NCBI RefSeq assembly: GCF_964194025.1
Contig: NC_134482.1
Coordinates: 46,996,001-47,060,000 of the forward strand
Source: Convolutriloba macropyga
Lineage: Eukaryota
Direction of reading: 5' to 3'
Length of the DNA: 64,000 nucleotides
Shown here: positions 12,508 through 64,000 of the stretch, piece by piece
How positions within the stretch are numbered: position 1 is the first letter of the stretch
Layout of the letters: the number at the start of each line of letters is the position of its first letter
The notes under the pieces: generated by a model
Told to the model about the DNA's origin: nothing
What the model saw: only the letters and a program-made list of their open reading frames with translations
Database searches by the model: none
Made by a program: the position numbers and the translations under genes

Positions 12508-12892
12508 GGCCCGCAATTATGAGGATCAATTTTGAAAACTTTCAGAAGCCTAGCGCTTACAATTTTCTACTCTAGCAGCAGTGAAAAATGGTTTTGCTAA
12601 GGCCAGCCAATCTAGGCAGTTAATCCAGCTATCAATTGGTTGAAATCATTACATTACGGATTGCATCACATCGATAGATATTTTAAATTCACATCCTATC
12701 TAGGCAACTGAAATATGTCACCATTACAATCAATATATTCCGTAATGATTTCAATCAAATTTTAGCTGGATTAACTGGCTGTAAAGCTTGGGTCTGCTTT
12801 CTAGCAAACCTATTTTCAATGCTGTTAGAGGAGACAATTAAAACCACTTGAATCACGAAAAGTTTCTAAGCTGATCTTTAAATTTCGGGTCT
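12508..12892. mobile_element. Diverged foldback MITE (long inverted arms)
   Basis: TAATCCAGCTATCAATTGGTTGAAATCATTAC (12621) is inverted relative to GTAATGATTTCAATCAAATTTTAGCTGGATTA (12742). Symmetry extends outward about 110 bp with mismatches. Confidence 0.65.
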
Positions 12893-14099
12893 TCAAATTT
12901 CAATGCCTTTTTATTAACTTTTTTCTTTTCTTTTGAATTTTAGTGGCTGTTTATAATTCTCCTCCACTTAGCGCGCAAGGTAACATGTTTTTCAATCAGT
13001 TGTTTTTTGGCGTTCCGAACCTTAACGTTTTGAAGATAAAAAAATTTTCACAACTCACGCCAAATTTGCCTTAAAATGGCTTATAAGACTTTAAAACTGG
13101 CGATATCCTAAATCAAAACTGCACAACAATGGAGCACAAAAAGCATCATAGAGGGTCTGTATGGGCTAGAGGTACTAGTGACTGACAAAAGACGAGGCCT
13201 TAACGAAAAGGGAAGAAGTCTGGTCTGAAATCAGTATCAGGAGGATTATAGGTCAAATTGTGTAGTGAAAATTTGGGAAAAAAGTGGGACAAGCGCATTG
13301 AAGGAACAAAGAGACAAAAGGATTTCTTATAATATTAAACGGATCTTAGAAAATATAAGTCCCGGAAAACAAAAAATACATATTTCTACAATACGGAGGA
13401 AAAATCAGCCTTCAATTTAAGGGCAAACTAGAAAGATCATAAGTTTCGGTTAATCTGATTTTCAATTTGCGAGAACTGCTCAATTATTTATCTGCCGTCA
13501 CTTAAATCGCCCCTTGAAAACAACCCAACATTTCTCATGATTTATGATATAAATAATTGTAGTGGACTTAATTTCACGCATGGTTGGCAAACTTGCCAGT
13601 AATCAATTTTCGAGCATCAACGGAACCATCCCACTTTGGGACAACATTCGGCTTTGTGAATTGACACCTTACAAGCCTTCGATTACAAAACTATCGCTAT
13701 CCTGAGAGTAGAAGGGCATGAATTGGGGGGACTTGCAAGTATGTCTGTGCAAACCAGCCAGCACCCAGGCCTAGGCCTGGACTTATCAAAAGACTTTAAA
13801 AGTCTAGTGGGGGTTGCAATATTGACTATAATCACACGGCCGAGCTTCCTAGTTAAAGTCGAGCTAATATCTTTTCAGGCTACAAGCTCACCAATTGAAA
13901 AAGCTGGCTATTGGCAGTAAAAAGAATCATGCAACTAACATGTTGTATCGAAAACAAAGTTTCGAGTATTTTTCATTTTGATCTTATCGCTGTATCAAAG
14001 AGCTGAAAAAAACTTTCTGAAAAGAAAAAAGAACTAATAAGATCCATTCAATTCAATTTTCTCTTACTTTTTCTTTGAAAAACGCAACAAGAGAAATTA

Positions 14100-17000
14100 G
14101 GAGTTCAATAGAACGGCACGTTTCATTATTTCTAACAACGTAATTTGTTATTAATTAATCTGAGTGCCGAGCAATCTTAATCATGGCGATTGACAGTTTT
14201 GACAGTTTGTTTTATTCTTTTGACGAGTTCAGTTAATCGATGATCGTGCGCGGTGGGCCAAAATTTTTTGAACGTTATTTCTGTTGCAAAATTTTTTGAC
14301 TTTATCTCTAGCTTTGCATCGAGCATGATCCATGCGTATTGTCCTCGTTACATCTTGGATTGAGATGTACTTATATAAAAAGCGTTCGATGTAAATTGCA
14401 TTTGAGTTATTATATAGCTTAAGGGAGGGAAACTTCAAAAAATGGTCAATGCATGCAAGGAAGTACACTTCTCTGTCCTAGCGTCTTATAGTGAGCCACC
14501 AAAAACAATTTTTTTTCTTCATTTTGTCCGACGCACGATTTGATTGGGAACCTTTTTGTTTTTGGTATCCTGATCGTTGTTACCGAACTCGGTACAGGGC
14601 GGCCTTTTTTGGAATTTTTGATGAGGTCTCTATATATGAGGGGGACCACAACCAGTGGACTAGTTTGGTCATGCCCACATGAAACTGGGTGTGTCGCGTG
14701 TAGTACTTCGATGAATACCTCCTTCATAGTGTGAGTGTGTGGAATTGTAAATTTGTTGTCTAGCCGAAGTTACTCATTGTATACATTGAGTTTGTTGTAG
14801 GTGCATTCATTTGATTGCTGACCGCCTACCATCTTTGTCCTTTTGAAGAACAAAGTTCCAAATCTCTTGTAAAACAGAATCTCCATTTGTCATTACTGCA
14901 AATAGTTTCAAGCTAAAGATGGCTCTAATTGTCCTGTCTAGCTCTTGATCTCATTTTGGTGTGTCTTTTTGATTCGGGCTCAGGAAAGCAGTAAAAGAAA
15001 TTGCTTTTTGTTTGCGTAACTGGAGCATTTTTTTGTGTGTTGTTAAGCTGTGAGCTCATTTTGTTTAAACAAAGGTTGTAACGTTTTAATAGTGAGTGTG
15101 TATTGGATGTTCAGCTTGGCAAATAATTGTGCTGTTGTTAGCTCTGTGGTTATTGGTGCTCTTACGTCATCATTCATCACACGGTTGCTTAGTCTTGTGT
15201 TGTTGCATTCGCTGCGTAGGCTGTAATTGTGTTCAGTTTGGAGTGTAGTCAGTATCATTCTTTGATATGGCGCGATTGCTTTCTGTCTTTTGGAACCGTT
15301 CCACCATTGCAGAGGTCTTTTCCGCCGGCTGCCACAAGAGCTGCCACAAGTTTGATTTCAGGAACAAGATTTTGTAGTTTTTTAATCATTTGAGGGCTCC
15401 AGTGGGTCTCTTTTGCGTGATCTTCCACCTTGATCACCTTGATGGATTCCATTTATCTTTTTTATTATAGCGTCCACTTCTGCTACAACAAATTCTTGGT
15501 CGTATATGCGGGGGTAACGTGAGATTTAGTCTGCAGGTCTCGATTTTGATCCATCCATGTATTCATTTTAGAAATGGAAGGGGATTATTCTGTCGCACAA
15601 GTGTTTTAACTGGCTGCGGTGGGCTTTTCTGCTCTTTCTTTTAGGATGGATCTCAGCGCCAAATTGTCTGCTTATATTGCAAAGAATTGACCGTAAAATC
15701 AATGTTTGAAGTGTTTTTGGTCGAGATTACACCAATTAGTTCGATATTTTTCTTCATCGTTGTCTAAAAAAAACGTAATGCGTATGGTATGGTTTCCCAA
15801 CCTTTACTTGTTTCCTGGTCAAGTACTGCTCCTAGTAATGATCGTGATGCATCCATACGAACTGTTGTTTTTTATTGTACAATTGTAGTGTAGCTTCTTG
15901 TGTTGTTTTAGTTTTCAAATGCTGCCTGATGGTTGGGTTCCAGGTGCAATTGTTGTCCCTTTTCAGAAGGCCGCTGAATTCTTTACATTGTGTTGCGTGG
16001 TTGGGTAAGCACTTGGTTAGGTAGTAGACGCTACCTAAGAACGAGTTTAGTTGCTCCCGTCTTACTGATTAGTGCTTTGATACCTTGTTGGTTGATTTCG
16101 TAACCCAGCCATTCGACTTGTATTTACTCAAAATGACATTTTTCAAGGTTTATTGCGAGGTCTTTGTCGCGTTTTTTTGACCATTTTATTACTTTTTCTG
16201 TGAGATTTTGAAATACCCCTCTTAACACTATGATTATGTCACCTAGGAAGCTGAATGTGTCTCTGAGACCCATTAGTGTTTTGTCGGTTGTCTTTTAAAA
16301 TTCGACAGGCATACATGTTAGTCCGTCAAAGCCTGTTACAAATTGGTTATTTTTGCTGGCTTGATCATCTATTAAGTTGAAATTGCATTTCTTGTTGATT
16401 CATGTAGGGTCAATTGGTTGTACGTGGATCATAGGTCGATGGTTGAGAAAAGTACTTCTTCACCATGAGACGATTTTGACTTTGATTTTGCCTTGCTATC
16501 AAGAAACATCGATGTTGTTCATTTGATATTTGTTCTTGTGTCCGGTTTTGTTGATTACCCTGGACTGCAGAGCTTGCTTGATAGTTGTTCTTCTCTTCGG
16601 ACCCGTTCTTACAGTTGATGATATGCAGTTTTTGTTATTTTGCTTTTCCTTGTTAGTTTTTCAATTACTCTTTAAACGGTTATTGTAATTGGATGGGTAT
16701 TCTTCATCCTCGTTGATGAAAGGGTCTGACATTGTTTTTGAGCTTGGATTTGACCGTTTGGTTTTCTGGCTGCCCTATGCGTGATATGAGACAGTGAAAC
16801 GTTTTTCTATTTCTTGATTTTGATTTTTACCTTCCAAATTTTATATCATGTTTATGTTCTTACCTTCCGTGCAGAATCCGCCATTACCCAAAATTTGGTG
16901 TTACCAATTTTAATATGTAGTTGAGTAGGCGTCCTCTGTGGGGGAGATGGGCTTGACTCTATAGTCATTGTTCGAGTCCTCGTGTGATTCGTTCACGTTG

Positions 17001-18063
17001 GTGTTTAGAATTACTATGTTTATTCTTTCTTCTATTTGTGTCTGCTCATCTTCTGTGAATTCGTTGATGTTGCTTGAGATGTACCTGTTCAGGTTAGACT
17101 AGAAAATTTTTCAAAATGAATTGGTTTTTTGCAGCGACTGCTTATCTGTCCAAGCGCATTGCTTTTCGCACTGTGGTCTTGTTTCGACGATTGTCCACAA
17201 TTTTGGCAATTGTGCTGCAGTTGCTGTTGTGGTTGTCGTCCGGATTGAATATATCCTCCTCTGGATTGTCTTGGGTTACCGCGCTATCCAGAACTTGAGA
17301 TAGCTAGTATTGGTTCTTATCTTCCTACTATAGAGACCACTGAAGGGTGTGAATTTTTCTGAATATGGATTGCTAATTGGCTTCTCGCACCTAGTTTTAA
17401 CATAATGGCTAGTTTTTTTGCCTTATCCGGGCAAGTGCTATCTTCAATTGTTCATTTTGTATTTCTGGTTTGTTTATATTTGCCATGAAGATGCCTGTTA
17501 AAGTTCCCCTAGAACTTCGACTTGAGAGACTGCTGGTTGCTGAGGGTTCTATTTGTTTTGATCATCAAAGAAGATATGAAATTTGAGAAAAACATCGACG
17601 CTTGCTATTTGACATGCTCTGGTCCAGTAGCCGGATTCTCGCTTTTTCTCTCTGACAATTTGACAACTGAACTTTGAGATGGCTGTTCACACGTCAAACC
17701 CATGCCTCGAAATATGCTATATTCTGTTCTGTAAAAGGTCAAAGCTGGCAAACAGTTTTTTCAGCAGAGTAGTGCTTGATAAGTTTTGCTTCACGTGGAA
17801 GTGAACTTTGAGTTCCTGTTTTGATCGATTTCTGGTCTTTTTCTTCCAGCTGAAAATATCCGAAAGAAATCAACCTATTTCATTCAATTTATATGTCTAT
17901 CTATCAAAGTAGTCTCTGAAACTGATAACCTGCGAGACTCCAAGGAAAAACAACTCCCATTTTCTATAATTTAGGGAAATGTAGTTATTTTTGCATCACT
18001 GTCAATGTCTTCCGAAGTGAATTGTGAGCTTTTCGGAGATTGTTTTAACAAGATCGAAATTGT
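14100..18063 (-). mobile_element. Decayed Ty3/Gypsy LTR retrotransposon internal region (gag-RT-RNase H-integrase)
   Basis: Minus-strand motifs in RT-RH-IN order: TGFDGLTCMPVEF and FLGDII (RT, about 16.2-16.35 kb), EWLGYEI, MDASRSLLGAVLDQE..GWETIPYALRF (RNase H, about 15.8 kb), LHATHP and IRMDHARC (integrase, 14.3-14.7 kb). Many stops and frameshifts; cut off by the gap. Confidence 0.85.
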
Positions 18064-18248
18064 NNNNNNNNNNNNNNNNNNNNNNNNNNNNNNNNNNNNN
18101 NNNNNNNNNNNNNNNNNNNNNNNNNNNNNNNNNNNNNNNNNNNNNNNNNNNNNNNNNNNNNNNNNNNNNNNNNNNNNNNNNNNNNNNNNNNNNNNNNNNN
18201 NNNNNNNNNNNNNNNNNNNNNNNNNNNNNNNNNNNNNNNNNNNNNNNN
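18064..18248. other. Assembly gap (185 N)
   Basis: Run of N. Confidence 1.
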
Positions 18249-19210
18249 CAGAATTGTCAGCGGCAATTCAGTACAGTTACCGGACGCAAAGTGCACCAAA
18301 CAAGATTCTGCAAAGCCGGTTTGTCAAAGAATGTCGTCGACAAGTCAAAGTTCGAGCAACTAGAGGCGAGCCTTACCTGTGACAAGTGTGAAAAAAAGTT
18401 CAAAACAGTCAATGGCCGAAAAGTTCACCAATCGAGATACTGTGGCAAACCTAAAGCAGTTGCCACACGCGTGTTTTCCTGCAAAGTACAAGATGTTCTC
18501 GGAAACGAGTTTGAAAACATAGAAGCGTTCAAGTATCTCGGATCATATGTCAGCCTCAAGCATGGAGACCTGCAGGAAGTCAATTGCAAACTTGCAGAAG
18601 GTAGACAACGGTTTGCTAACTTCCAAAATCTCTGGAAGAGCAAGCAGCTCAGCGTGCACCTCAAGTGCAATTTGTACAACGCACTCGTTTTATCAGCCGT
18701 GCTGTACAGCTCAGAGACTTGGACTCTTTCGAAATTAATGGAGAGAAAACTTGAGAGTTTCCACTGTGGTTGTCTTCGGAGAATTCTACGTGTGTCATAT
18801 CTGGAGAAAGCAACGAACGAAGAAATTATGTCAAGATCACGAATGCTTCAACTATCCACGATGATCATGCTCAAACGGATAAAATGGTACGGACACATCC
18901 AGAGAATGGAACCAGGAAGATTAGCCCGCAGTGCCTTCGATTGGGACCCGCCCGATCAATACGTCCATGCTAGACGCGCTCCTGGGGGGCAACGGAAAAC
19001 GTGGATGAGTCAAATCGAAGGAGACTGTGTACGAAACAAAGTATCGTTCTCCAGATTGCAGGAGAAAGCAGCAACCGGGTAAAAGAATGCCTTCAACAAT
19101 TTTGTCGTACAGCACTTCACAGAAAAACCAAACAAATAACTCTTCTTATTTTGTTTGTATTTGTTGTCAACCGTGCCTTTATTTCATATTTGGAATTAAA
19201 GTGTTGAAAC
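18249..19210 (+). mobile_element. 3' portion of an RTE-like non-LTR retrotransposon (RT C-terminus/thumb) with two zinc-finger motifs
   Basis: Open frame to 19082 with FKYLGS, LYNALVLSAVLYSSETWTL, FHCGCLRRIL, WYGHIQRM and GGQRKTW, all RTE-type motifs. The 3' end abuts (AGT)n. Confidence 0.9.
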
Positions 19211-22200
19211 AGTAGTAGTAGTAGTAGTAGTAAAAGACTCAATTCCAAAACAGGAGTGACGAGATCATTTAGTCCAGGCATCAGGAGAAATTAGGAGCGA
19301 CAATTTTTACAAAAACATTTCACAAAATAAGAACAAGTGATATCAATGTTAAAATGAGAAGTTTCTTCAATTAGGAAAATATGTAACTTAGTAAGAATTA
19401 TGCCCAGCGGCATTTCGAATTTAATAACTTTTAGTTTTATCAGTTATTTTACTCATCTGGTGGCCCTGTCAGAAAATTTATCTTCAGAGCAAAACTTCTG
19501 CGTTTTAGGCACACTAAACAGTCCAAGACTCGATGACCTTGTGTTGAAAAAACTATTTTGTATTTCACTCTCAACCTCAGCTTGTTTATTGATCATTTTT
19601 CCAAGCAGCACCATATCTGACTGAATCATTTGATAGCAAACTGGTAAGAAAAAAGTCTCTGAAGTCCAAAAACATAAACGCGATCAGAAATAATCCATCT
19701 GAAAACTATTGATTGAAATTTTTCCAGCTTGCGCATATAGGTTACGGCAGGCTGCCATACAGAACATCCGCAAAGAAGGATGGAGAAGACGAGGTTTTGA
19801 TACAACAAAATTTACCTCCTTTTTGAGATCGTGAAAGGCACGTTTCGCCTTATAAAATAGAAATTTTTTTGCATTTAGCTAATTTTGTATCAATGTGACG
19901 CTGCCAGCTAAAATTACTCGATATGGTGAAGCCAAGGTCTTCAATATAGGTAATATAATCGAGTGCTGTCTCACCTAGTTTTAATACTTGCGAAGGGTAA
20001 AAATTAAAAGGTAAATGTTTACATTTAGACGGATGAAAGCTCAATCAATTTAAAACTGGCCACTGCTGCAAGGCGTTAAGGTCTTGTTGTATAAATTGTG
20101 ACTCGCAGCATGTGGAAACTTTCAAATCATCAGCGTACAAAAATACGATCCATATGAGATTACCTTTGGCATATCATTGATAAATAACAGAAAAATAATT
20201 GGTCCAAGGACACTGCCTTGTGGTACACCAGATGTCACATTGCAGAAAGGAGAGAAAGTGTCATTCACGTTGACTCACTGTAAGCGATCAAAAAGAGAAG
20301 ACTCCAAAAACACCATAAAACATGGACAGACGCCGCGAACATGATGTTCAGACAGCAAAAAGTGATGAGGAACAGTGTCAAAGGCCTTCCTGATGTGAAA
20401 ATAAACTGAAAGGGCAGGAGAACTATTGTCCTGAGATTTATAAACAATATCTAATAAATCAGTCATTTGAGTTACACTGCTCCTTGATTTCATTAATCCT
20501 TGTTGTTGTTTGCCAATAAAAAACTTCACCTTTGGATAAAAAAATCAAACAAAATGCGATCGAATACCAACGACAGTTTACACGAAACACTTATTGGACG
20601 ATAGTTTTCTACCAAGTTCAGTGGTCCCGTTTTATGAAAGGGCGTAATATACGTTATCTTCCATTAAGAAGGTCAGGTGCAATATTTGGTAACCCAGTAA
20701 AAGAGTAGTTGAACTGCTGGAGATAAAATAGTCGCACACTGACGAAGAACGATTGAAGGAATGTTATCAGCACCAATAGAGCTCAAACCATCACAGTGCA
20801 ATAATAAGGTTCTTATCTCTGTTTCTGAAAACGTCACGTTGTCTATACACAACTCTGGTTAAAACTCATAATAAGCTGGCACATCATCTTTAATTTTGGG
20901 AGAAAAAACGGAACCAAAGAGAGTATTAAAACCGTTTGCGATCTCAGAGCTAGAGGACAGAGACACTCCGCTATAAGACATTACAGAAGGAAAAGACTTA
21001 CTGAAGCCAAGTTGTCTCTGCAGCCTAAAACAGTGAAAAAAACATGGAAGGTTGAATTTTCCAATGAAAATTTGCTTGTCCAGTTCAATCGACTCGTTAA
21101 GAGATTTATTAAGTTCTCTTTGTTTTAGTGAGAGCAAAAGTGTCCAGTTTTTTTAAAGCTTACGGAGGTTAGTCTCTTTCTGATTCAAGAGATGCTTTGT
21201 AATTGAGGAGAAAAAGATTGGCACATTACGTTGCTTAGCTCTTTTCATGAAATAGAAAATTTTTTGCATTTAGCTAATTTTGTATCAATGTGACGCTGCC
21301 AGCTGAAATTACTCGATATGGTGTAGCCAAGATCTTCAATATTGGTAATATAATCGAGTGCTGTCTCACCTAGTTTTAATACTTGCGAAGGGTAAAAATT
21401 GAAAGGTAAATGTTTACATTTAGACGGATGAAAGCTCAATCAATTTAAAACTGGCCACTGCTGCAAGGCGTTAATGTCTTGTTGTATAAATTGTGACTTG
21501 CAGCATGTGAAAACTTTCAAATCATCAGCGTACAAAAATACGATCCATATGAGATTACCTTTGGCATATCATTGATAAATAACAGAAAAATAATTGGTCC
21601 AAGGACACTGCCTTGTGGTACACCAGATGTCACATTCCAGAAAGGGGAGAAAGTGTCATTCACGTTGACTCACTGTAAGCGATCAAAAAGAGAAGACTCC
21701 AAAAACTCCATAAAACATGGACAGACGCCGCGAACATGATGTTCAGACAGCAAAAAGTGATGAGGAACAGTGTCAAAGGCCTTCCTGAAGTGAAAATAAA
21801 CTGAAAGGGCAGGAGAACTATTGTCTTGAGATTTATAAACAATTTCTAATAAATCAGTCATTTGAGTTACACTGCTCCTTGATTTCATGAATCCATGTTG
21901 TTGTTTGCCAATAAAAAACTTCACCTTTGGATAAAAAAATCAAACAAAATGCGATCGAATACCAACGAAAGTTTACACGAAATACTTATTGGACGATAGT
22001 TTTCTACCAAGTTCAGTGGTCCCGTTTTATGAAAGGGCGTAATATACGTTATCTTCCATTAAGAAGGTCAGGTGCAATATTTGGTAACCCAGTAAAAGAG
22101 TAGTTGAACTGCTGGAGATAAAATAGTCGCACACTGACGAAGAACGATTGAAGGAATGTTATCAGCACCAATAGAGCTCAAACCATCACAGCGCAATAAT

Positions 22201-24396
22201 AAGGTTCTTATCTCTGTTTCTGAAAACGTCACGTTGTCTATACACAACTCTGGTTAAAACTCATAATAAGCTGGCACATCATCTTTAATTTTGGGAGAAA
22301 AAACGGAACCAAAGAGAGTATTAAAACCGTTTGCGATCTCAGAGCTAGAGGACAGAGACACTCCGCTATAAGACATTACAGAAGGAAAAGACTTACTGAA
22401 GCCAAGTTGTCTCAGCAGCCTAAAACAGTGAAGAAAACATGGAAGGTTGAATTTTCCAATGAAAATTTGCTTGTCCAGTTCAATCGACTCGTTAAGTGAT
22501 TTATTAAGTTCTCTTTGTTTTAGTGAGAGCAAAATTGTCCAGTTTTTTTAAAGCTTACGGAGGTTAGTCTCTTTCTGATTCAGGAGAGGCTTTGTATGGG
22601 ACGAGAAAAATATTGGCGCATTACGTCCTTGGCTCTTTTCATTTTAACACATTGACTAAAATTTTCTTGCAGATAAAAATACCAGCGCTCAGGATAGTCC
22701 AAAGTCTTGATATCGTTGAACGTTAGAAATTTGAACAAGTCAGAAAGATAAAAGCTGAAAGCTCGCGCATTGATGACGAGCGTGAAAAACCTGACATAAA
22801 TTTAGCATCAATTAGATCGAAGTTAAAAGAAAACAAACTTGGATAATGGTCGGAAAAAAGTTGGGTTCCAATAGATTGAGGTAAATGATCCACATTAGTC
22901 AAGATAAGATCCAACGTGTTCTGACCGTTGTGAGTGGGACCGCTAACAAACTGACTCAAATTAAGTTCGTCAAGTAAATCTACAGACTTAAGTTCCTGAG
23001 AATTAATCAATGTCTGTGTTTCCCAACTGATACCGGGAAGATTAGAATCACCGAGCACATAAATATAAACTGTTGTCGTAGGCAAATAGTTGCTGACTAA
23101 ACACTTGATTTTCGCTAGATATTGATTAAGGCAATCAGTGAGCAAATCGATGTCGAAGTGAAATGGATATCCGACTTGGGGTTTGTTTATCAAAATGAAA
23201 AACGACGGTATGCTATCTAGAAGGCCACGGGCAACAGAGAAAATATATTGTGGTAATTTAACATCAATTTCTTGTGTTTGGATGCAATTAGAAGCAGCAG
23301 TGAGAACACCTCCGTGTTCCTTTTTGCTGCGATCGGAACGTGGCAAAACGTTGAAATGAGGTCCTAGTAATACTTCTGAATCAAAAATGCTTTCAGAGAG
23401 CTATGTTTCAGTTGAAAATATTCAGGAAATTGATGATGGCGTCATTATTCTAATCAATTCTTGAGGTTTGGACAAGCTGCAAATTGTCTGACAATTGAGA
23501 AGCAAGCAGTTGGCTAGTGTTAGTCACTTACTGCTCATTTCAACTTCACGCCCTTTATAATAAACTTTCAAATTCTTTATCCGAAAGTCTTCTTTATTTT
23601 TTCTTTTCTGATGAATCATATGGAAGTTCTTCCCGAGTACATATTTCTCCTTCTGTCTTTCATGGGATAACAAAAACCTTTTTTGTACACAAGTTTTAGT
23701 AACTTTTGCAGGTACTGACTTCTGGCGAAGCAATTCTGAAGGAAAAGGGGATTGGAAGTTCTGATAAGTATATGATGGCAGTTCAGGGGATTGAATTTTT
23801 GCCTAGTCGTCTAACAGCTGTCACATTTTTGTCACAAGCTAACCCCATATGCGATATTATTTTTCTGACCTCCATCGATTCCTTCTCGATTTGCTTCATA
23901 TACGAGTCTTCAGATTCAGTAACACCTTTTATAATAAACTGCAGATCAGGTTTTTTTCTGAGCGTTTGAGCGACCTGAACTAATGTCAGCGTAGGATGCT
24001 AAGGTGTCATTAACAGCTTTGCTGACGTCATCGTGTAAACGACTAGTAATAGACTTTTTAACAGCTTTAGGAATTAATTCTGCAATTGATGATGTAAATT
24101 TGTTACTTAAGGAATCAAATAAGTCATGCAACTTAGCTTCTGTTTTTGAAGAAGTGAAGATATAGTAATTCTGCTCGACACACGAGTCACAAAGCCACAC
24201 ACAATTGCGTTTAGCTCCAAGCTATTTAACTTCTTCCTCGGAGAGGTGAGCACAGGTACCATGAAACCAAAGTTGACATTTTTCGGACCCAATCGCAGAA
24301 CCGTCATCCTCTTTGACTCCTTTCTTGCATTGGCCGCATTTGACTGATGTCTTAGTAGAGTTAACTCTTTGATTCCTTGATCCCATTGTTCAAGCA
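19211..24396 (-). mobile_element. Near full-length decayed CR1/L2-group LINE (element A): PHD-finger ORF1 plus APE-RT ORF2, (TAC)n tail
   Basis: ORF1 from ATG at 24386: CGQC..EKCQLWFHGTC..WLCDSC (PHD). ORF2: LLNCQTI, GGVL, GDSNLP, TLDLILTN, SDHY (APE); [25 protein letters not shown] (RT). Tail at 19211-19231. Confidence 0.9.
19854..22643. repeat. 1395-bp internal tandem duplication in ORF2 of LINE A
   Basis: ORF pairs offset by exactly 1395 bp (19850/21245, 20275/21670, 20859/22254). Confidence 0.95.
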
Positions 24397-25403
24397 TAGT
24401 AGTAGTAGTAGTAGTAAAAGACTTAAATTCCAACAAAAGGAATACATAGTAAAAGAAAGACATGACAGTACAAATTAACAAAGCACAGTAGCAAATTAAT
24501 ATCTGCAGTCCACACAGCGACATTTAAGAAAATATGTACATGGCCGAAAGTAATTAACAGAAAGTGTTTTGGCTATGAGAAAATTTTCTAAATTCTTACA
24601 AAAAATATTGAAAGATGACCTAAAGTCAATGACGTTGATAGAAATTAAGTAATTTGCGGAGTGGATAGTTCGACTAAGAAAACAGTTGTCAGTTTTGAAT
24701 TTTTTGTTCAACGGTTGTTCAAAAAAAAGTTTTGACTGATCCTCGGGAGCTGAGTGTCGTATTATTGACATGCAGCTTTAAGTCACTCTCCATTGTTCCA
24801 TGCCAAGTTTTCCATAGTAGAATAAGGTCAGCTCGTGCAATTTGATAGCAAATTGGATACAAATTTAGTTTTGAAAGTGTCTCGTTGTAATCCTCAGGCC
24901 TAATAACCCAGCGCAACACTTTGCGCTGAAACTTTTCTAACAATTTCAAAATACCAGTTGTAATACACCAAGCTTGGGAGCAGTAAAGTAGCACAGATAG
25001 AATCATCGTTTGGTACAACGTTTTCTTGCGGAGAATAGAAACTGAAACGGTATGCTTCTTTTCAAAAAAATTACAAATTTTATTACATTTCGCAAGTTTC
25101 GTCTTAACATGTGTTGTCCAACAGAGATCTTCAGTAATTAGCATTCCCAAATCCATAATCTCTCTAGTGAAAAGAATTTCCGCTTCTAGAAATATGGGAG
25201 ACTGGCTGCATTTAAAGTTCATCGCTTTACACTTTTCTGGATGAAATTCAAGTTGATTTTTGCGTGACCATTCATAAAGACCATTGATGTCACATTGCAG
25301 ACCTTCGAAACAATCAACGCTTAGCAGCTTTAGGTCGTCCGCATATAAGTAAACATGGGAGTTTTGCACATGGTCAACAAGATCGTTCATGTACAAGATA
25401 AAC

Positions 25404-26626
25404 GCTAAAATATTAGTTCAAATCATAATTTTGACTAAATGAGAATGCATAGGGCAAAAAACATTTTGTGCATGACAAAACGAAATTTGCAAAACCTCCA
25501 CAAGAGGGATACTTATGGTTAGGGCAAATTCGGAATAACCCTAAAAATACAAGAACATGGACCAAAAATCAATATCCAGAGGAATGGTCTTCAAAAATTG
25601 TGAATCAGACTCTAGAAAAAATAATAAGTGGCGGTAAAGACCAATTAAGACAGAAATTCCAGAAATTGGTTCAAGAACGCGAGAAATCTCCTTCAGAAGG
25701 GTCATCTGAGCAAGAGGAAGGACTTGGTAGTGTGGCACGAAATCTAATGATAAGCAAACTATTTTTCTACAATACAGAGGCAACCTCACTCAAAACTTCG
25801 CAAGCAAATTGAAGAAACTATGCGAATTGCAAGTAGTTTTTACAACGCGAAAATTAAGATCGTGCCTCCCCACCCTGAAATCATCCTTTGATAGAGATCT
25901 GAAATTCCACGTGGTATATGAAATTAAATGTAATGGATGCGGATCCATCTTTGTTGGGCAAACAAGCCGGCATGTTACCACAAGGATAACAGAACATCAA
26001 AAGAAGGATTCACAGGTGGGTCAACATCTAGTTGAATGTCGTGGCGCCACGAATGACATTGAATGGAGAATTCTGGACGCCTGTCGGTCAGTAGAAAAAC
26101 TAATGATCATCGAAGCTATATATATCAGCAAGCCGAAGCCGGCACTAAACACACGCGACGAATATAGGGGGAGGGAACTCACGCTAAAATATTAGTTCAA
26201 ATCATAATTTTGACTAAATGAGAATGCATAGGGCAAAAAACATTTTGTGCATGACAAAACGAAATTTGCAAAACCTCCACAAGAGGGATACTTATGGTTA
26301 GGGCAAATTCGGAATAACCCTAAAAATACAAGAACATGGACAAAATCGAAAAATCCGGAATAGGAATGTTTTTAAGTAAATTGATAACAGATGTAAATAT
26401 GTGTTGTAAATAGGCTAAATATTGTATATAAGGAAAAATTTTCGATTGAATTTTTTAGAATGTTTCCTAGAATTGTTTTAATTGTCATCTCAGACAAATG
26501 TAAATACATATTCATTTTATCTTTTAACAATTTGTAAAACAGTTTTAACCTGACGATGAACGTAAAGTTCGAAAACGTTTGTTTTTAGTATTGGAAGTAA
26601 TTTTAATTTGACAAATTGGTTTCTTT
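25404..26626 (+). mobile_element. 5'-truncated Penelope-like element (GIY-YIG endonuclease plus pLTR)
   Basis: NQYP thumb motif; VVYEIKCNGCGSIFVGQTSRHVTTRITEH..IEAIYI..KPALN (GIY-YIG, 25809-26195). 12-bp TSD TACAAGATAAAC at 25392-25403 and 26627-26638. Confidence 0.92.
26545..26585 (+). ncRNA. Hammerhead ribozyme-like motif (minimal type I, Penelope pLTR)
   Basis: CTGACGA core, stem II GAAC-GTAAA-GTTC, GAAA, then palindromic AAACGTTT. Its position in a PLE terminal repeat is as expected. Confidence 0.65.
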
Positions 26627-54988: not shown

Positions 54989-55425
54989 TAATTGCTTATT
55001 TGTTGGCAAACGAAGTTCGTAGTATTTATGTTAGTCCTCGTGGGGGGTCTAAAGTCCTCGAGGTGGTTGAGTATTGGTTACGTGACTCTGCTTGAAGTCA
55101 CTGAGAACTTCTGGCGTTTATCGAGAACCGCGAAGTGGTTCGAGATATTAAGTCAGAATTTCGATGTGACTTCTGTAGAGTCATGTAACCATGCTTAAAA
55201 CACGATATGCGAACGTTTTAAAATGGCGGAAGTCAACTCCTGGCTATGTATATAGCAACTTCTGGCACTGCAGACTTTCGGCATTTTAAAATGTGAACGT
55301 GAGTGTTCTAAGTCCCCGTTAGTGGTAACTATTCTTGCCGATCACTAACTTTTAACTAGCAACAACCAAAAAACAATCTTCTCGCCGGTCGTTATAGAGC
55401 AATTCCTCCGACGCTAGTCGGTTGT
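54989..55425 (+). mobile_element. HINE-like element (type H1, diverged body)
   Basis: TAATTGCT...AACGAAGTTCG left end; right end GAGCAATT plus CCGACGCTAGTCGG. Confidence 0.6.
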
Positions 55426-55635
55426 GTTTGAATTTGGCACCAGGAATCGAAGTATCCAAAATATATTTTGGAATAAATAGAAACATGAGTGTTGTAAGTT
55501 ACCAGGCGCTTGAAAAGAGAGAAACCGTTACAATTGTGCTTTCTTTTCATGTCTGACTGGATTTTACATCCTAGTGCCGCATCATTGTGGATTACTTGTG
55601 GGTACAATTTATGTATTGTGTTGTTATTATTTCAG

Positions 55636-55935
55636 GACGGTGGCCTCCGGGACATGGAGGAATGTGAACCTTGAGACCGGGAATCACTTCTGACCTTGAC
55701 TGGATTTCTCCTTTATAAAGAGAACAACTGTGTTATCCTTATTCAACCGTGACGATGATTCGTTTTCCCCTGAAGTTTGTCCGAAATAATGGTTTTGTCG
55801 AGGATACAATAGAAACAACTAAATATTTGAAGACAATTTGATGAAATTTTAAAGCGACGTGTACATATGTTTGTTTTTCATTCCTTTAGTGATTAATCAA
55901 GTAACTGACAGAAGGTTCTGTACTATTAAAATCTA
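55636..55935 (+). other. Probable terminal (3' UTR) exon of the host gene
   Basis: TTATTTCAG acceptor whose first G completes a split TA|G stop. ATTAAA at about 55925. Confidence 0.45.
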
Positions 55936-55991
55936 TGAAGTTTTGCCAACTGGCTGGAAAAATGGAACGAACTTTGGCCGAACAGATTTTG

Positions 55992-56240
55992 TGTAGCTGC
56001 GAAGCTGTGAGCTGAGCGGAGACATATTGCGGTGCTCTTGGTTTTTTATGACTCCAAGAGGAGTATTGGTTTTCTTGAGGTTTTTTTTAATCCGAAGTAC
56101 TATTTGTTCAGGCGGCGTTTGACCCAATAGTGAAAGTGAGTAAAATTGCTATGTGAACTAACTTTTCTGAGCGATAGTAGTATTTTAATCATGCTTTGCG
56201 TTCAGTGGATGACTTTTCGACTTTGAATGAAAAGTGTTTT
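55992..56240 (+). mobile_element. Left terminus of a type H2 Helentron-like element with no right end in the window
   Basis: TAGCTGCGAAGCTGTGAGCTGAGCGGAGACATATTGCGGTGCTCTTGG matches 48309 and 53325. The next 200 bp match 44500-44700. Confidence 0.75.
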
Positions 56241-56269
56241 TGAGAGAACTATTTCAATTTGTGCGATCT

Positions 56270-57100
56270 TTACTATTACAAAGTGGTGCTTTCTATATTA
56301 TTATTTTGTTTTACCCCTAGTACCTTTGGAGTAAAATGCGGGTTCAAAGCCTTGTATTCATCCAACTGTTTTTTACTCTCTCCAATTCTCTCAATAGAAT
56401 TCAATCAGGAGAAATACAAAATTGAGGGGGTTTATACAATAGAATTATGGCATTAGTATTTAAAATTCAAATATGCCTTCCTTCTCCGGGTTCTCTTCAA
56501 AGCTTTGAGTCAGCTATTTTTTTAAATAAAGACTAGGAATAAGTTTTTAAGCCGCAACAGCAATGCAAGTCATGAAGGAACAAGAGATTCGATTTTTTCA
56601 GAGTTTTACCTCAGCGGTTGGAAATTATCTGAGCCATACTGAGTTTTTCAGTCTTTAAGTGTGCATGCTTCTGTCATTTTCAGTTTTATCGTGTGTGGAG
56701 TGTGTTTTCCTGCTTTATAATACCAAAAACAATTAATGCAACTATTGAGTGTTGCCATGTCGGTATTAATTTCTGCTTGAATGGAAAAATTGTTTCGAGC
56801 CTGCCATATTTGATTGAAGAATGTCATCAATCAATCAATTCAATTGCAATTTCCTCCAATTGCGCGCACCACCCATTCGCCTTGTCAGTTGGAATCTTGA
56901 TGTCTATTCTATTTTAGTTGCTTTTAAATTAGGCTGAAGTGACTCAGGACTGAAAACATTGAGACTGAAAACATCTTGTTTTTTTGTTTATTTACTTGGA
57001 CTGCTTAACTTCTCCATCATTGTGTCTCTTTTTCCTCTTGACCGTTAATTGGATGCTCTGAAAGGCTCCAAGTTTCTGCTTTTTCCGTTCTAGAGGCCAT
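56270..57100 (-). pseudogene. Decayed spliced gene of unknown product, head-to-head with JmjC unit 1
   Basis: Protein-like fragments (MASRTEKAETW; VKRKKRHNDGEVKQS; IDIKIPTDKANGWCAQLEEIAIELID; IERIGESKKQLDEYKALNPHFTPKVLG) and a GTAAAT...TTTTCAG intron-like segment at about 56950-56995. Stops and frameshifts. Confidence 0.35.
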
Positions 57101-57366
57101 TAATTTCATTCAATTTACATTTTTAACATTTTTTTTGCAAAGATAATTTGTATTTTTCCTCGATATTACTGTGCATCACATCAGCTGACATTTATTATGG
57201 GTTGTTTTCTGTGAATTCGAGAAATTGAAGTGTTGTAAGATCATAATTGATGTTTCAGATGGCGTCAATTGCTGCCGTTTTTCCCATTTAACTTTAATCT
57301 CAATGCTCTTTGAACAATTATTGACGTCAGCAGTGTTGCTCACGTAATTACTGAATGAATTCGGCA

Positions 57367-58640
57367 ATCGATAATACAAGGTGAGCGCTAATACTAATGA
57401 AACCGTTACTGCTAGTATTCAGAGATAGAAACACGATTTTTTGTAGGTTTTCGATTAAGTCATGCGAGGTTGTGCGAAGTTTTCAACAGCAAATTTGGTC
57501 AATCGAGAAACTCGAAAATTTAATCTTGCCACAAGTGCGATGTGCTGATGGGGCAGATATCCAAACATTGTTGGATTTGGGAGTACATGCAAATTATAAG
57601 TATCCCAATATTTGTAATGAAAATGGTTGGCCACGCTTTCCTCTCGAGATTAAAAACAATCGGTACTTCAATATTTGCTCAAATTTCTGCATTCATTTGA
57701 GAAGTTCTTCGGAGTGGTCGGATGTTATTGATGACTATCAATCGCAAAATAGAATAACCAATTATCGCAATATTTTACCTTCTTATTTTGCATCTTCCTA
57801 TTGCACTTTTAATATTGGGGGTATAACTAATTTTTCTCTCCTTGCGGAGGTACTGTTAACAAAGACTGATGGTATGATTCAAAAAGGTGAATGGTTCATT
57901 CAACCACACATTGAGATAGGATGGGACGTTAGTATATCCAAGGTTCCTTGTGGCAACAAAGTTTTCGTTATATGTGAGCGAGGAGACGACTGGGCCAATT
58001 TTGATAGTCTCAATACTACACCCCACGATTTCTATTGAATCTTCTCGATTTTTATTGAATGGTCCTTAAAATACGACTGAAAGGAATACTATAAGTTCCT
58101 ACTTCCCCAATAGCTCCTCCTTTTAGTGTCAGCCTACTCTCTACTGTCGGTGCTGACTCGATCTGGTCGTTTTTTGTGTGCGGTTCGGAGGCCACTATTT
58201 TGACGATTGCAGTCGATGCTGGGATGTTCTGCGATTTGTTGCTACGGCTCACGTCGTGATTTTGTTTGCAATATGATTTCCAGAGGGTATTGAAAAGACC
58301 ATTGAATATCATCGTTTGAAAATTAAAGGTTACACAGATATCTTAAATGACGCGCTGGAGCGTTTGTTCGCTTTCAAGAATTCGGGTGTTGTCCATCTAT
58401 CGCTGGTCGGCCTCGTATATCCGAAGAGAAGATGCTTGCTTTGCGTCTTCCTTGTGTTAAAGCCAAGGAGGAATCCAAAGAGAAGGTAATCTAAAGTTTC
58501 TAATTTTATTTGTTGATGAATTTTTCATTTCTCTCAGACGCGCGTTTAATGACAGAGTTAAATTCCGAATTCTTTGGCACAATTGTTTGATGAATTGTTT
58601 CTTTTGCTTGGAATTTCAAGTTCAAATCTATAAAAGATTT
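57367..58640 (+). pseudogene. JmjC-domain (2OG/Fe(II) dioxygenase) gene copy 1, disrupted
   Basis: Intron-like segments 57381-57446 and 58486-58537. ORF 57397-58038 contains FIQPHIEIGWDVSISKVPCGNKVFVIC. Stop at 58038; the distal His codon is deleted. Confidence 0.75.
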
Positions 58641-58829
58641 ACAAGGGTGTTGAGAATAATTAATAACTGATGAAATTGAAATTTTGTAAGATCATAATTA
58701 ATGTTTCAGATGGCGTCAATCGCTGCCGTTTTCTCCCAATTAGCTTAAATAATCTTAATGCTTTTTGAACAATTATTGACGTCAGCAGTGTCACGTAATT
58801 ACTGACGTAATTACTGAATCATTTCGGCA

Positions 58830-59860
58830 ATGGATAATACAAGGTGAGCGTTAATACTAATGAAACACTAAATACTAGTATACAGAGATAGAAACTCGTT
58901 TTTTGTAGGTTTTCGATTGTCATGCGAGGTTGTGCAAAATTTTCCAGAGCAATTTTGGTCAATCGAGAAAATCGAAAATTTAGGCTTGCAGCAAGTGCCA
59001 AATGTTGATGGGACAGATATCCAAACATGGGTGGATTTGGTAATACATGCAAATTCTAAGTATCCTAATTTTTGTAATGCAAATGGTTGGCCACGCTTTC
59101 CTCTCGAGATATAAGAACGAACGGTACTTCAATTTTTGCCCCAATTTCTGCAGACATTTAATAAGTTCTTCGGAGTGGTCGGATGTTATTGATGACTATC
59201 AATCCCAAAATAAAATAACCAAGTATCTCAATATTTCACCTTTTTTTGCATCTCATAGCACTTTTAGTATCAGGGGTATAGTATAACTAATTTTTCTTTC
59301 GCTGCGGAGCTACTGTTAAGAAAGACTGATGGTATGATTCAAACAAAAATTACGACTGAAAGGAATACTATCTGGTCGTTTTTGTGTGCGGTTGGGAGGC
59401 CACTCGTTTGACGATCGCAGTCGATGCTCGGATGTTCTGCGATTTTTTTGCTACGGCTCACGACGTGATTTTGTTCGCAATATGGTTTCAAGAGAGGAAA
59501 TTGAAAAGACTATTGAATATCTCCGTTTGAAAATTAAAGGTTACAATGATATCTCAAATGACGCGCTGGAGCAATTGTTCGCTTTCAAGAATTTGAGCGT
59601 TGTCCATCTATCGCTGGTCGGCTTCGTATATCCGAAGAGAAGATGCTTGCTTTGCGTCTTCCTTGTGTTAAAGCCAAGGAGGAATCCAAAGAGTAGGTAA
59701 GTTAATGTTTCCAATTTTGTTTGTTGATAAATAATGTTTCATTTCTCTCAGACGCGCGTTTAATGACAACGTAAAATTCCGAAATCTTCGGCACAATTAT
59801 TTGATGAATTGTGTCTTTGTCTGGAATTTCAAGTTCAAAGCTTTTAGCAGGGTTTGATAA
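58830..59860 (+). pseudogene. JmjC gene copy 2, catalytic motifs deleted
   Basis: ATGGATAATACAAG|GTGAGC start. Deletion at about 59343 removes the HIE/K region; the HAVLT segment is also missing. Confidence 0.7.
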
Positions 59861-60030
59861 TAAATAGTAGCTGATGAAATTGAAATTTTGTAAGATCATA
59901 ATTAATGTTTCAGATGGCGTCAGTTGCTGCCCTTCTTTCCCAAATAACTTAATTAATCTTAATGCTTTTTGAACAACTATTGACGTCAGCAGTGTTACGT
60001 AATTACTGACGTAATTTAATCATTTCGGCA

Positions 60031-61195
60031 ATGAATAATACAAGGTGAGAGCTAATACTAATGATACAGTAACTACTAGTATACAGAGTTTTGCGACATT
60101 TTCAAGAGCAATTTTGGTCAATCGATAAATTCGAAAATTTAGGCTTGCAACAAGTGCCAATTGTTGATGGGGCAGATATCCAAACAGGTTGGATTTGGGA
60201 ATTTATGCAAAACTAAGTATCCTAATTTTTGGTAATGCAAATGTTTGGCCAAGCTGTCCTCTCTATATTAAGAACGAACGGTTCTTCAATATTTGCCCCT
60301 ATTTCCGCAGACATTTAAGAAGTTCTTCGGAGTGGCCGGGTGTTATTGATGGTTTTCAATCCCAAAAAATAACCAAGTATTGCAATATTTCACCTTCTTA
60401 TTTTGCATCTTCTGATAGCACTTTTATAATCGGGGGTATAACTAAATTTTCGCTGCGGTGCTACTGCTAACAAAGACTGATGGTATGATTCAAAAAGGTG
60501 AATGGTTCATTCAACCACACATTGAGATAGGAGGGGACGTCAGTATATCCAAGGTTCCCCTTGGCGACAAACTTTTGTTTATATGTGAGCGAGGAGGTGA
60601 CTGGGCCAATTTTGATAGTCTCATTACTACACCCCAGGATTTCGTTCGATTCTTATTGAATTGTCCACAAATTACGACTGAAAGGAATACTATCTGGTCG
60701 TTCTTGTGTGCGGTTGGGAGGTCACTATTTTGACGATCGCAGTCGATGCTCGGATGTTCTGCGATTTTATTGCTACGGCTCAGGACGTGATTTTGTTCGC
60801 AATATGGTTTCAAGAGAGGGAATTGAAAAGTCTATTGAATATCTCCGTTTTAAAATTACAGGGTACAATGATATCTCAAATGACGCGCTGGAGCAATTGT
60901 TCGCTTTCAAGAATTCGGGCGTTGTCCATCTATCGCTGGTCGGGCTCGTATATCCGAAGAGAAGATGCTTGCTTTGCGTCTTCCTTGTGTTAAAGCCAAG
61001 GAGGAATCCAAAGAGTAGGTAAGTTAATGTTTCCAATTTTGTTTGTTGATGAATAATGTTTCATTTCTCTCAGACGCGCGTTTAATGACAACGTAAAATT
61101 CCGAAATCTTCGGCACAATTATTTGATGAATTGTGTCTTTGTCTGGAATTTCAAGTTCAAAGCTATAAAAGATTTAGCAGCGGTTGATAATTAAT
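60031..61195 (+). pseudogene. JmjC gene copy 3, frameshifted, lacks the distal-His segment
   Basis: HIEIGGDVSISKVPLGDKLLFIC is present (60458-60733); the frame jumps from TTERNT directly to the C-terminal part. Confidence 0.7.
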
Positions 61196-61360
61196 AGTAG
61201 CTGATGAAATTGAAATTTTGTAAGATCATAATTAATGTTTCAGATGGCGTCAGTTGCTGCCCTTCTTTCCCAAATAACTTAAATAATCTTAATGCTTTTT
61301 GAACAACTATTGACGTCATCAGTGTTACGTAATTACTGACGTAATTAAATCATTTCGGCA

Positions 61361-62525
61361 ATGAATAATACAAGGTGAGAGCTAATACTAATGTTACAGT
61401 AACTACTAGTATACAGAGTTTTGCGAAATTTTCAAGAGCAATTTTGGTCAGTCGATAAAATCGAAAATTTAGGCTTCCAACAAGTGCCAAATGTTGATGG
61501 GGCAGATATCCAAACATGGTTGGATTTGGGAATTTATGCAAAACTAAGTATCCTAATTTTTGTAATGCAAATGTTTGGCCAAGCTTTCCTCTCTATATCA
61601 AGAACGAACGGTTCTTCAATATTTGCCCCTATTTCCGCAGACATTTAAGAAGTTCTTCGGAGTGGCCGGGTGTTATTGATGGTTTTCAATCCCAAAAAAA
61701 TAACCAAGTATTGCAATATTTCACCTTCTTATTTTGCATCTTCTGATAGCACTTTTAGTATCGGGGGTGTAACTAAATTTTCGCCGCGGTGCTACTGCTA
61801 ACAAAGACTGATGGTATGATTCAAAAAGGTGAATGGTTCATTCAACCTCACATTGAGATAGGAGGGGACGTTAGTATATCCAAGGTTCCCCTTGGCGACA
61901 AACTTTTGTTTATATGTGAGCGAGGAGGCGACTGGGCCAATTTTGATAGTCTCATTACCACACCCCAGGATTTCTTTCGATTCTTATTGAATTGTCCACA
62001 AATTACGACTGAAAGGAATACTATCTGGTCGTTTTTGTTTGCGGTTGGGAGGCCACTATTTTGACGATCGCAGTCGATGCTCGGATGTTCTGCAATTTTA
62101 TTGCTACGGCTCACGACGTGATTTTGTTCGCAATATGGTTTCAAGAGAGGGAATTGAAAAGACTATTGAATGTCTCCGTTTGAAAATTACAGGTTACAAT
62201 GATATCTCAATTGACGCGCTGGAGCAATTGTTCGCTTTCAAGAGTTTGGGCGTTGTCCATCTATAGCTGGTCGGGCTCGTATATCCGAAGAGAAGATGCT
62301 TGCTTTGCGTCATCCTTGTGTTAAAGCCAAGGAGGAATCCAAAGAGTAGGTAAGTTAATGTTTCCAATTTTGTTTGTTGATGATTAATGTTTCATTTCTC
62401 TCAGACGCGCGTTTAATGCCAACGTAGAATTCCGAAATCTTCGGCACAATTATTTGATGAATTGTGTCTTTGTCTGGAATTTCAAGTTCAAAACTATAAA
62501 AGATTTAGCAGGGGTTGATAATAAA
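61361..62525 (+). pseudogene. JmjC gene copy 4, near twin of copy 3
   Basis: Same lesions as copy 3 plus a private frameshift and stop. Confidence 0.7.
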
Positions 62526-62691
62526 TAGTAGCTGATGAAATTGAAATTTTGTAAGATCATAATTAATGTTGCAGATGGCGTCAGTTGCTGCCCTTCTTTC
62601 CCAAATAACTTAAATAATCTTAATGCTTTTTGAACAACTATTGACGTCAGCAGTGTTACGTAAGTACTGACGTAATTAAATCATTTCATCA

Positions 62692-63670
62692 ATGAATAAT
62701 ACAAGGTGAGAGCTAATACTAATGATACAGTAACTACTAGTATAGAGAGTTTTGCGAAATTTTCAAGAGCAATTTTGGTCAATCGATAAAAGCGAAAAGT
62801 TAGGCTTCCAACAAGTGCCAAATGTTGATTGGGCAGATATCCAAACATGGTTGGATTTGGGAATTTATGCAAAACTAAGTATCCTAATTTTTGTAATACA
62901 AATGTTTGGCCAAGCTTTCCTCTCTATATCAAGAACGAACGGTTCTTCAATATTTGCCCCTATTTCCGCAGACATTTAAGAAGTTCTTCGGAGTGGCCGG
63001 GTGTTATTGATGGTTTTCAATCCCAAAAAATAACCAAGTATTGCAATATTTCACCTTCTTATTTTGCATCTTCTGATAGCACTTTTATAATCGGGGGTAT
63101 AACTAAATTTTCTCTCCTTGCGGAGCTACTGTTAACAAAGACTGATGGTATGATTCAAAAAGGTGAATGGTTCATTCAACCACACATTGAGATAGGATGG
63201 GACGTTAGTATATCCAAGGTTCCTTGTGGCAACAAAGTTTTCGTTATATGTGAGCGAGGAGACGACTGGGCCAATTTTGATGGTCTCATTACCACACCCC
63301 AGGATTTCTTTCGATTCTTATTGAATGGTCCACAAAATACGACTGAAAGGAATACTGTAAGGTCCTACTTCCCTAATAGCTCCTCCTTTTTGTGTCAGCC
63401 CGCGCTCTGCTGTCATGCGGTGCTGACCCGATCTGGTCGTTCTTTTGTGTGCGGTTGGGAGGCCACTGTTTTCGACGATTGCAGTCGATGATAGGTTGTT
63501 CTCCAATGTTTTTGCTACGGCTAACGATGTGATTTTGTTCCCATTTTGTTTTCAGGAGAGGGAATTTAAAAGAACATAAAATATCTACGTTTGAAAAATA
63601 CAAGTGACACTGATATCTTAAACGACGCGCTGGAGCATTTATTAGCTTTCAAGAATTCGGGCGTTGTTGT
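62692..63670 (+). pseudogene. JmjC gene copy 5 with the complete catalytic triad in one frame
   Basis: ORF 62829-63491: H (63183)-I-E, Lys at +17, and CQPALCCHAVLT with His at 63414 (+77 aa). Frameshift upstream (about 62875) and stop at 63491. Confidence 0.8.
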
Positions 63671-64000
63671 TGTGCTGACTTGATCTGGTCGTTTTTTTGT
63701 GTGTGTGCTGTCGGGAGGCCACTGTTTTAGGCTATTGCAGTCGATGATCGGATGTTCTGCGATTTTATTGCTACGGCTCACGTCGTGATTTTATTTGCAA
63801 TATGGTTTCCAGAGGGTATTGAAAAGGGCATTGAATATCTTCGTTTGAAAATTAAAGGTTGCACAGATATCTTAAGTGACGCGCTGGAGCGTTTGTTCGC
63901 TTTCAAGAATTCGGGTGTTGTTGTCCATCTATCGCTGGTCGGCCTCGTATATCCAAAGAGAAGATGCTTGCTTTGCGTCTTCCTTGTGTTAAAGCCAAGG

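Follow-up and report, generated by a model that had tools for sequence, protein, structure and literature searches.

A tandem array at the end (57221-64000) of a 64,000-nt stretch of Convolutriloba macropyga DNA (contig NC_134482.1, positions 46,996,001 to 47,060,000; hereafter the window) raises the question of what was amplified there, in what setting, and whether any copy is still functional. A sequence-only reading of the window had seen in it the tandem copies of a small JmjC gene, i.e., one related to the histone demethylases. We consider the best explanation of the whole, with a probability of about 0.85, to be that the JmjC cassette of an old Gypsy-like retroelement was duplicated, expanded in place and decayed, and that the intact form of the gene would encode an oxygenase, for which an anti-silencing role is proposed by analogy. 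The coordinates of all features are collected in the table below.

The expected five head-to-tail units of about 1.3 kb with almost no spacer were recovered when the window was compared with itself. Their lengths range from 1204 to at least 1464 nt, and the spacer between them is 0. On the window's contig, the array extends beyond the window end as far as about 71625 and contains about 12 units in total (window-equivalent coordinates, to 82070, were obtained by stitching the natural overlapping pieces L002 and L003 of this contig). Every unit corresponds to positions 9744-11225 of the single-copy reference locus L001. All 11 junctions are identical (AGCTGAT/GAAATTGAA), and the edges of the segment in the single-copy reference share a microhomology of at most one base; together these two observations indicate one founding illegitimate duplication followed by unequal crossing-over. 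The units are 79-97% identical to each other over the whole array and form three groups, namely u1-u5, u6-u8 with u12, and u10-u11. Within the window, u3-u5 are 93-97% alike and u1 is 87-89% identical to the rest, and the youngest pairs of the array are u3/u4 (97%) and u6/u7 (94%). In a tree, the array units form one clade separate from the single-copy elements L001 and L008. The only repeat reported by Tandem Repeats Finder (periods up to 500) was a nested 254-bp duplication inside unit 5. Thus, a duplication with a single junction was followed by expansion, contraction and decay inside a dead element.

A second array was found on another contig of the same assembly (ctg36301, 4620-20489; locus L007). 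It is 96% identical to the window array, including 1.3 kb of flank outside the element, and its outer flank is rearranged and repetitive. Its units match the window units one-to-one apart from an extra three-unit block, a pattern that marks unequal exchange of a higher order. L007 represents the second allele of this locus or else a segmental duplication. Its orthologue of unit 5 (v8, 1648 nt) appears to have the nested 254-bp duplication as well. The objection that the array might be an assembly artefact had been raised beforehand. We judge an artefact unlikely because the units differ from each other by 3-21%, because the array on the second contig has a different unit number, and because units are covered by short contigs that come from three further samples of this organism. 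Among those short contigs, none bridges a unit junction by 31 nt, and no single read over several units was seen. The unit 5 open reading frame (ORF) product is recorded in ENA assembly ERZ25071359, on a contig of 359 kb that is the window's own (L002). A word-index search with a 104-aa C-terminal ORF for further array-type copies gave no match, and no Rfam family was found in 55000-64000.

The array sits within one old Ty3/Gypsy-like long terminal repeat (LTR) retroelement on the minus strand, which extends from 56274 to about 79962 (window-equivalent). Past the last unit, the element interior continues with remnants of a 789-aa ORF and of pol and then ends in the 5' LTR; gag and the 5' part of pol have been deleted, as seen from nucleotide-level collinearity with the full reference element L004. 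The two LTRs of the window element are 84.9% alike, and the insertion is therefore old. The reference element L004 has two 236-nt LTRs (8541-8776 and 21688-21923) that are 100% identical, a primer-binding site (PBS) starting with TGG, a purine-rich tract (PPT) ahead of the 3' LTR, a gag with a weak zinc-knuckle match, and a pol in the order reverse transcriptase (RT)-RNase H-integrase. All features used to define Ty3/Gypsy elements (LTR pair, PBS, PPT, gag zinc knuckle and pol order) are thus present in L004. Its layout is gag, pol, the 789-aa ORF (no Pfam match), several small ORFs, and the JmjC-like gene, which is antisense and lies immediately within the 3' LTR. Open frames are kept for gag, pol, the 789-aa product and the JmjC-like gene, and the L004 family looks, from its sequence, to have been active recently in the source genome. 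Of the earlier proposal that a stand-alone gene had been amplified like a satellite, the tandem amplification therefore stands, but the free-standing host gene does not, as the array lies inside this single element.

The search for intact copies elsewhere, which had been suggested beforehand, was successful. The nearest intact relative, P0002, is encoded on another contig of the same assembly, has 342 aa as called and is 76% identical to the window ORF. Its gene lies antisense beside a 1670-aa pol (RVT_1, RNase H, integrase) and a 789-aa ORF. The intact reference gene consists of a five-codon exon 1 (ATG at L001 9895), a 67-nt GT-AG intron and an exon 2 that extends to 11029, and encodes 355 aa; the N-terminal residues added in this model fit the length of the aligned relatives. 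The intact protein, first exon included, is thus somewhat smaller than the 380-400 aa estimated from the window alone.

A 15-mer containing TGACGTCA occurs once per window unit (5 matches versus 0.07 expected by chance), and the same upstream motifs are found in the intact reference gene (L001 9850-9880). At 57322-57350, 58777-58817, 59981-60010, 61311-61340 and 62642-62670, one or two ACGTAATTACTG repeats come after TGACGTCA; their TTACGTAA-like core resembles the sites of proline- and acidic-rich basic leucine zipper (PAR-bZIP) proteins. As judged from the motifs, the TGACGTCA and TTACGTAA-like sequences are probably the promoter of the antisense gene. AATAAA signals lie downstream of the gene in the unit. 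Upstream motifs, gene and AATAAA signals together suggest that the unit is a whole transcription cassette, with putative promoter and poly(A) roles for the flanking signals.

The sequence-only reading had assigned the gene to a compact JmjC protein similar to KDM2/KDM7, quoting a peptide with H-x-E, a Lys at +17 and a distal His at +77 from the first His. This peptide is indeed present in the 220-aa ORF of unit 5, with both residues in these positions, and the assignment agrees with the fold of P0002, the PDB profile matches and the motif register. A phmmer search with P0002 against 1.84 billion representatives found 134 representative relatives, 67 of them below 1e-10, all unnamed and derived from ENA assemblies and Logan contigs. 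The consensus of a 50-sequence alignment is WFTxGHIExGGDDSI...GxKL...QPALCAHxVLT...GWEA, in which His146 (43/47), Glu148 (46/48), Lys163 (46/48), His223 (48/50) and Thr143 (40/48, with Ser in 5) are conserved. When the 50-sequence profile was compared with all PDB sequences, the nine best matches were PHF8, PHF2 and KDM7 (E 0.06-1.2), with HxE aligned on HxD, Lys on Lys and HAVLT on HAVLT. A phmmer search of the PDB sequences with the window ORF gave nothing relevant, and a feature search of the ESM Atlas gave only weak, unnamed matches (scores of at most 0.54).

An AlphaFold2 model of P0002 from the single sequence was unusable, with a predicted local distance difference test (pLDDT) score of 32. 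With the 50-sequence alignment, the pLDDT rose to 91.4 with a predicted TM-score (pTM) of 0.87, and the model has the JmjC-type jelly roll for which this check had been proposed. Besides the catalytic core it comprises a helical domain and a tail of basic residues; His146 ends a strand, Lys163 starts a strand, and His223 lies within strand 222-227. A Foldseek search of the PDB using this model returned JmjC enzymes as all of the top 50 matches (KDM7A with 1.9e-8, then PHF8, PHF2, ceKDM7A, TYW5, KDM5B and UTX), and the Swiss-Prot models gave the same JmjC result. VIA-align gave Z scores of 14-15.6 over about 245-256 residues (model residues 1-316) to PHF2, PHF8, KDM7A and KDM2A, and 13.3-13.8 to JMJD5, FIH, TYW5, JMJD6 and UTX. 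No Pfam domain was found in P0002 or its relatives, which agrees with the earlier statement that PHD, CXXC and F-box modules are absent, and extends to leucine-rich repeats (LRR). The modelling thus indicates that the protein family has a JmjC fold with a conserved, predicted iron/2-oxoglutarate (2OG) site, and that it is closest to, yet distant from (10-14% identity), the KDM2/KDM7 catalytic core and is free of reader modules. The intact gene would accordingly be expected to encode an Fe(II)/2OG oxygenase.

KDM7, PHF8, PHF2 and KDM2A (JHDM1-type) are the best structural matches and the sole profile matches among solved structures. They share with the family the register of T-x-x-H-x-[DE], of the Lys 17 residues after the first His, and of HAVLT, which contains the distal His. 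However, apart from the low identity, the family has Glu in place of their Asp ligand, lacks the 2OG-contacting Tyr at His+10 and the PHD, CXXC, F-box and LRR modules, remains below the Pfam JmjC threshold, and is encoded by retroelements rather than by a host chromatin gene.

The association with retroelements extends to further members of the family. P0002, P0003, P0008, P0011 and P0014, which come from two assemblies, have mutual identities of 31-96%, and at all five loci examined the JmjC-like gene lies antisense within Gypsy-like elements. At three of the five it is located between pol and a 580-700-aa ORF (L006 6986-14952, L009 7325-16205 and L010 7772-14556), whereas in L004 it lies between that ORF and the 3' LTR. 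Among the more distant element families, the cassette was either moved or acquired more than once. No poly(A) tail was found in the Logan contig L005, which encodes a 37%-identical relative. Distant relatives (P0002 residues 310-342, P0005 at L005 1090-1150, and P0052) share a C-terminal A/G-G-R-P, a Lys/Arg-rich stretch and an (N/R)LP motif. This C-terminal motif may bind DNA in the manner of an AT-hook or act as a nuclear localisation signal. The array units all have the tail out of frame.

The array copies themselves are decayed, as had been noted for the window, where no copy is fully intact. When threaded on the reference frame, each unit contains 3-9 frameshifting indels and most contain in-frame stops; the longest ORF of the whole array has 220 aa. 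Several units have lost the start codon or the splice acceptor, units 2-4 have in common the 74-bp deletion of the distal His motif, and units 9-11 are large deletion derivatives. Among the window units, only unit 5 has kept His-x-Glu, Lys and distal His together. The conserved 2OG-contact Thr, three residues before the first His, is Ile in units 1-5 and is replaced in u1-u7. Comparing the u1 and u5 ORFs gives a ratio of nonsynonymous to synonymous substitution rates (dN/dS) of 0.74, and comparing them with the intact gene gives 0.33 (u5) and 0.49 (u1), all from small samples; these values would fit neutral decay after amplification. Because every unit is frameshifted and the array lies inside a retroelement, the units are to be read as pseudogenes and not as a free host gene family. 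On its sequence, the array is a pseudogene array, a tandem repeat derived from a transposable element (TE) with no coding function of its own.

These results suggest the following course of events. Elements of this family carry, antisense to gag-pol, a single gene for about 355 aa whose two exons are separated by a 67-nt intron, and its product would be a minimal JmjC-fold 2OG/Fe(II) oxygenase nearest the KDM2/KDM7 catalytic core. A 1.48-kb segment comprising the cAMP response element (CRE)-like motifs, both exons and the AATAAA signals would have been duplicated once by illegitimate recombination, creating the junction described above. Subsequent unequal crossing-over would have raised the number of units to about 12 and rearranged them, and over the same time the element would have decayed together with every copy of the gene. 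By analogy, the intact oxygenase may remove repressive methyl marks from chromatin at or near its element and so counter host silencing.

Several results do not sit easily with this reading. The Pfam JmjC profile (PF02373), which had been proposed as a check, gave no match for six window ORFs or for P0002 at E values up to 10; 4 of the 50 relatives matched it weakly (best E 0.0098), and its gathering score was reached by none of the window ORFs, P0002 or the relatives. The E values of the profile comparison with the PDB are marginal, the Foldseek TM-scores are just 0.35-0.45, and the protein that was modelled is P0002 and not a window copy. The suggested action on chromatin marks against silencing of the element is drawn from the nearest structural relatives and from analogy, and an argument of the latter kind counts against the reading as well. 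Finally, the divergence between unit groups (14-21%) is about equal to that between the LTRs (15%), so that the first duplications may have occurred near, possibly before, the insertion, and the element may have transposed with its array, which would change the sequence of events.

The last point leads to the alternative that the array predates integration, i.e., that a variant element with several JmjC cassettes, arising for example by template switching of the reverse transcriptase and perhaps favoured by dosage, transposed and later decayed. The identity between unit groups (79-86%) does correspond to a divergence equal to or above that of the LTRs, and a unit that forms a complete transcription cassette would suit such a history. 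However, both divergences come from short sequences and are uncalibrated. The only other array, L007, shares flanking DNA at 96% and is hence the same locus or a segmental copy rather than an independent insertion; the junction is not present in the single-copy L001, L004 and L008, and the young pairs u3/u4 and u6/u7 indicate that expansion went on in place. As the junction turned up in no independent insertion, we regard a pre-integration array as improbable. Equally doubtful, and argued by analogy, is the broader proposal that an unannotated retrovirus-like family encodes its own JmjC demethylase against repressive marks, with the array being a dosage amplification or a small-RNA trap captured by the host. 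A role of the dead array in the host, either as a source of antisense or small RNA against the JmjC gene of live elements (a trap resembling a piRNA cluster) or as a sink for bZIP proteins via 12 CRE-like sites, appears less probable still. It would be in keeping with the TE-rich surroundings, which include LINE-like and Penelope-like remnants, and with the many same-orientation copies of one TE gene that persist with copy-number variation, but the decay and the neutral-looking divergence need no function.

A functional cluster, in which several tandem JmjC genes would serve the host or the element, is largely refuted. Although ORFs of 213 and 220 aa remain, unit 5 retains its His-x-Glu, Lys and distal His, and the promoter-like motifs are conserved in each unit, all 12 units are damaged, compared with the intact gene, by frameshifting indels, stops or large deletions, and the losses of start codon, splice acceptor and conserved Thr together with the within-array dN/dS of 0.74 leave it very little room. 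Amplification as Helitron or Helentron cargo by rolling-circle transposition is refuted: its sole support is the tandem head-to-tail arrangement, whereas an LTR retroelement (L004), for which LTR, PBS and PPT were identified, is collinear with both the flank at 56270-57221 and the sequence that follows the final unit, and no Rep/helicase domain was found in window ORFs of at least 110 aa, a search that did not cover shorter or spliced remnants. The duplication, in-place expansion and decay of a Gypsy-borne cassette thus remains the preferred explanation.

Parallels exist for both parts of this explanation. The tandem repeats CRM1TR and CRM4TR are derived from maize centromeric Ty3/Gypsy elements (PMC3648361; review PMC6947457). 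As in the window, part of a Gypsy element became a head-to-tail array that was started by illegitimate recombination, grew by recombination or gene conversion and has locus-specific variants. Unlike the maize monomers, which consist of LTR plus untranslated region, the monomer here is an internal cassette that includes an entire accessory gene, and the array has remained within the element from which it arose. Ty3/Gypsy elements of Phalaenopsis carry an ORF for an AlkB-type 2OG dioxygenase, which its authors read as a counter to host surveillance (PMC9289625). In both cases an LTR lineage has fixed an extra ORF for a (predicted, in the present family) 2OG/Fe(II) oxygenase, and the AlkB enzyme erases a methyl mark. 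However, the Phalaenopsis ORF encodes an N6-methyladenosine (m6A) RNA demethylase of the AlkB type, occurs in plants and has activity shown in vitro, whereas the window family is known from sequence and a model, and the tandem amplification seen in the window is not reported for the AlkB ORF. The fission yeast JmjC anti-silencing factor Epe1 is described as limiting the spread of H3K9me heterochromatin (PMC6576747), an activity of the kind proposed here for a transposon-borne gene. This likeness is a functional analogy only, and Epe1, unlike the transposon-borne gene, is a host gene product recruited through HP1/Swi6.

A full-text literature search found no paper on a retroelement-carried JmjC gene or a transposon-encoded chromatin demethylase, an absence that does not prove novelty. 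In itself, the array is ordinary genome debris, and tandem repeats from the interior of LTR elements have already been described in maize. Its worth lies in the gene family to which it points, which is intact and unannotated and comprises 134 representative clusters, with none passing Pfam. If true, the anti-silencing role would represent a novel way for an element to counter silencing by its host, with a parallel in the AlkB RNA demethylase of the orchid Gypsy elements; the present stretch adds mainly the fold evidence and an example of cassette amplification and decay.

Table. Features of the JmjC-like array and of the retroelement that contains it (window or window-equivalent coordinates)
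Feature	Position	Strand	Remarks
3' LTR of host retroelement	56274..56509	-	236-nt LTR of L004 aligns at 87.5%; homology to reference element begins at 56270
Element interior, 3' LTR to array	56510..57220	-	Single-copy; collinear with L001 8748-9744 at 82%; lies 5' of the antisense gene
TGACGTCA (CRE-like) and TTACGTAA-like motif, putative promoter	57322-57336	+	About 60-90 nt upstream of start codon; recurs at 58777, 59981, 61311 and 62642
Unit 1	57221..58671	+	1451 nt; pseudogene; ATG changed to ATC; 7 frameshifting indels, 2 in-frame stops; distal His gone
Unit 1, longest ORF	57397-58038		213 aa; HIEIG at 57907-57921
Unit 2	58672..59875	+	1204 nt; pseudogene; HxE/Lys region lost by 171-bp deletion, distal His motif by 74-bp deletion
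Unit 3	59876..61205	+	1330 nt; pseudogene; HIEIG at 60518-60532; 9 frameshifting indels; distal His lost (shared 74-bp deletion)
Unit 4	61206..62536	+	1331 nt; pseudogene; 97% identical to unit 3; same 74-bp deletion
Unit 5	62537..64000 (ends at 64200 on contig)	+	At least 1464 nt (cut by window end); pseudogene; 5 frameshifting indels, 1 in-frame stop
Unit 5, best ORF	62829-63491		220 aa; HIEIG 63183-63197, GNKVF 63228-63242, CCHAVLT 63408-63428
Unit 5, nested tandem duplication	63420-63924		254 bp; 81% identity; copies the region just past the distal His
Later units	~64201, 65654, 67093, 68548 (328-nt remnant), 68876 and 69510 (each with 667-bp deletion), 70144	+	Continuation of the array on the contig
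5' LTR of host retroelement	~79734-79962 (beyond window)	-	Partner of the 3' LTR

Outside the element, a 277-aa open frame at 18249-19079 (+ strand) adjoins a run of N at 18064-18248 and has a weak DUF6451 match below the cut-off (E 7.7e-5). The window is AT-rich (31-43% GC) and rich in TEs. A remnant of a non-LTR (LINE-like) retrotransposon with endonuclease-RT/RVT_1 matches lies at 22723-25396 (- strand), and a remnant of a GIY-YIG-bearing (Penelope-like) element at 25809-26195 (+ strand); as a whole, the window looks like a TE graveyard.

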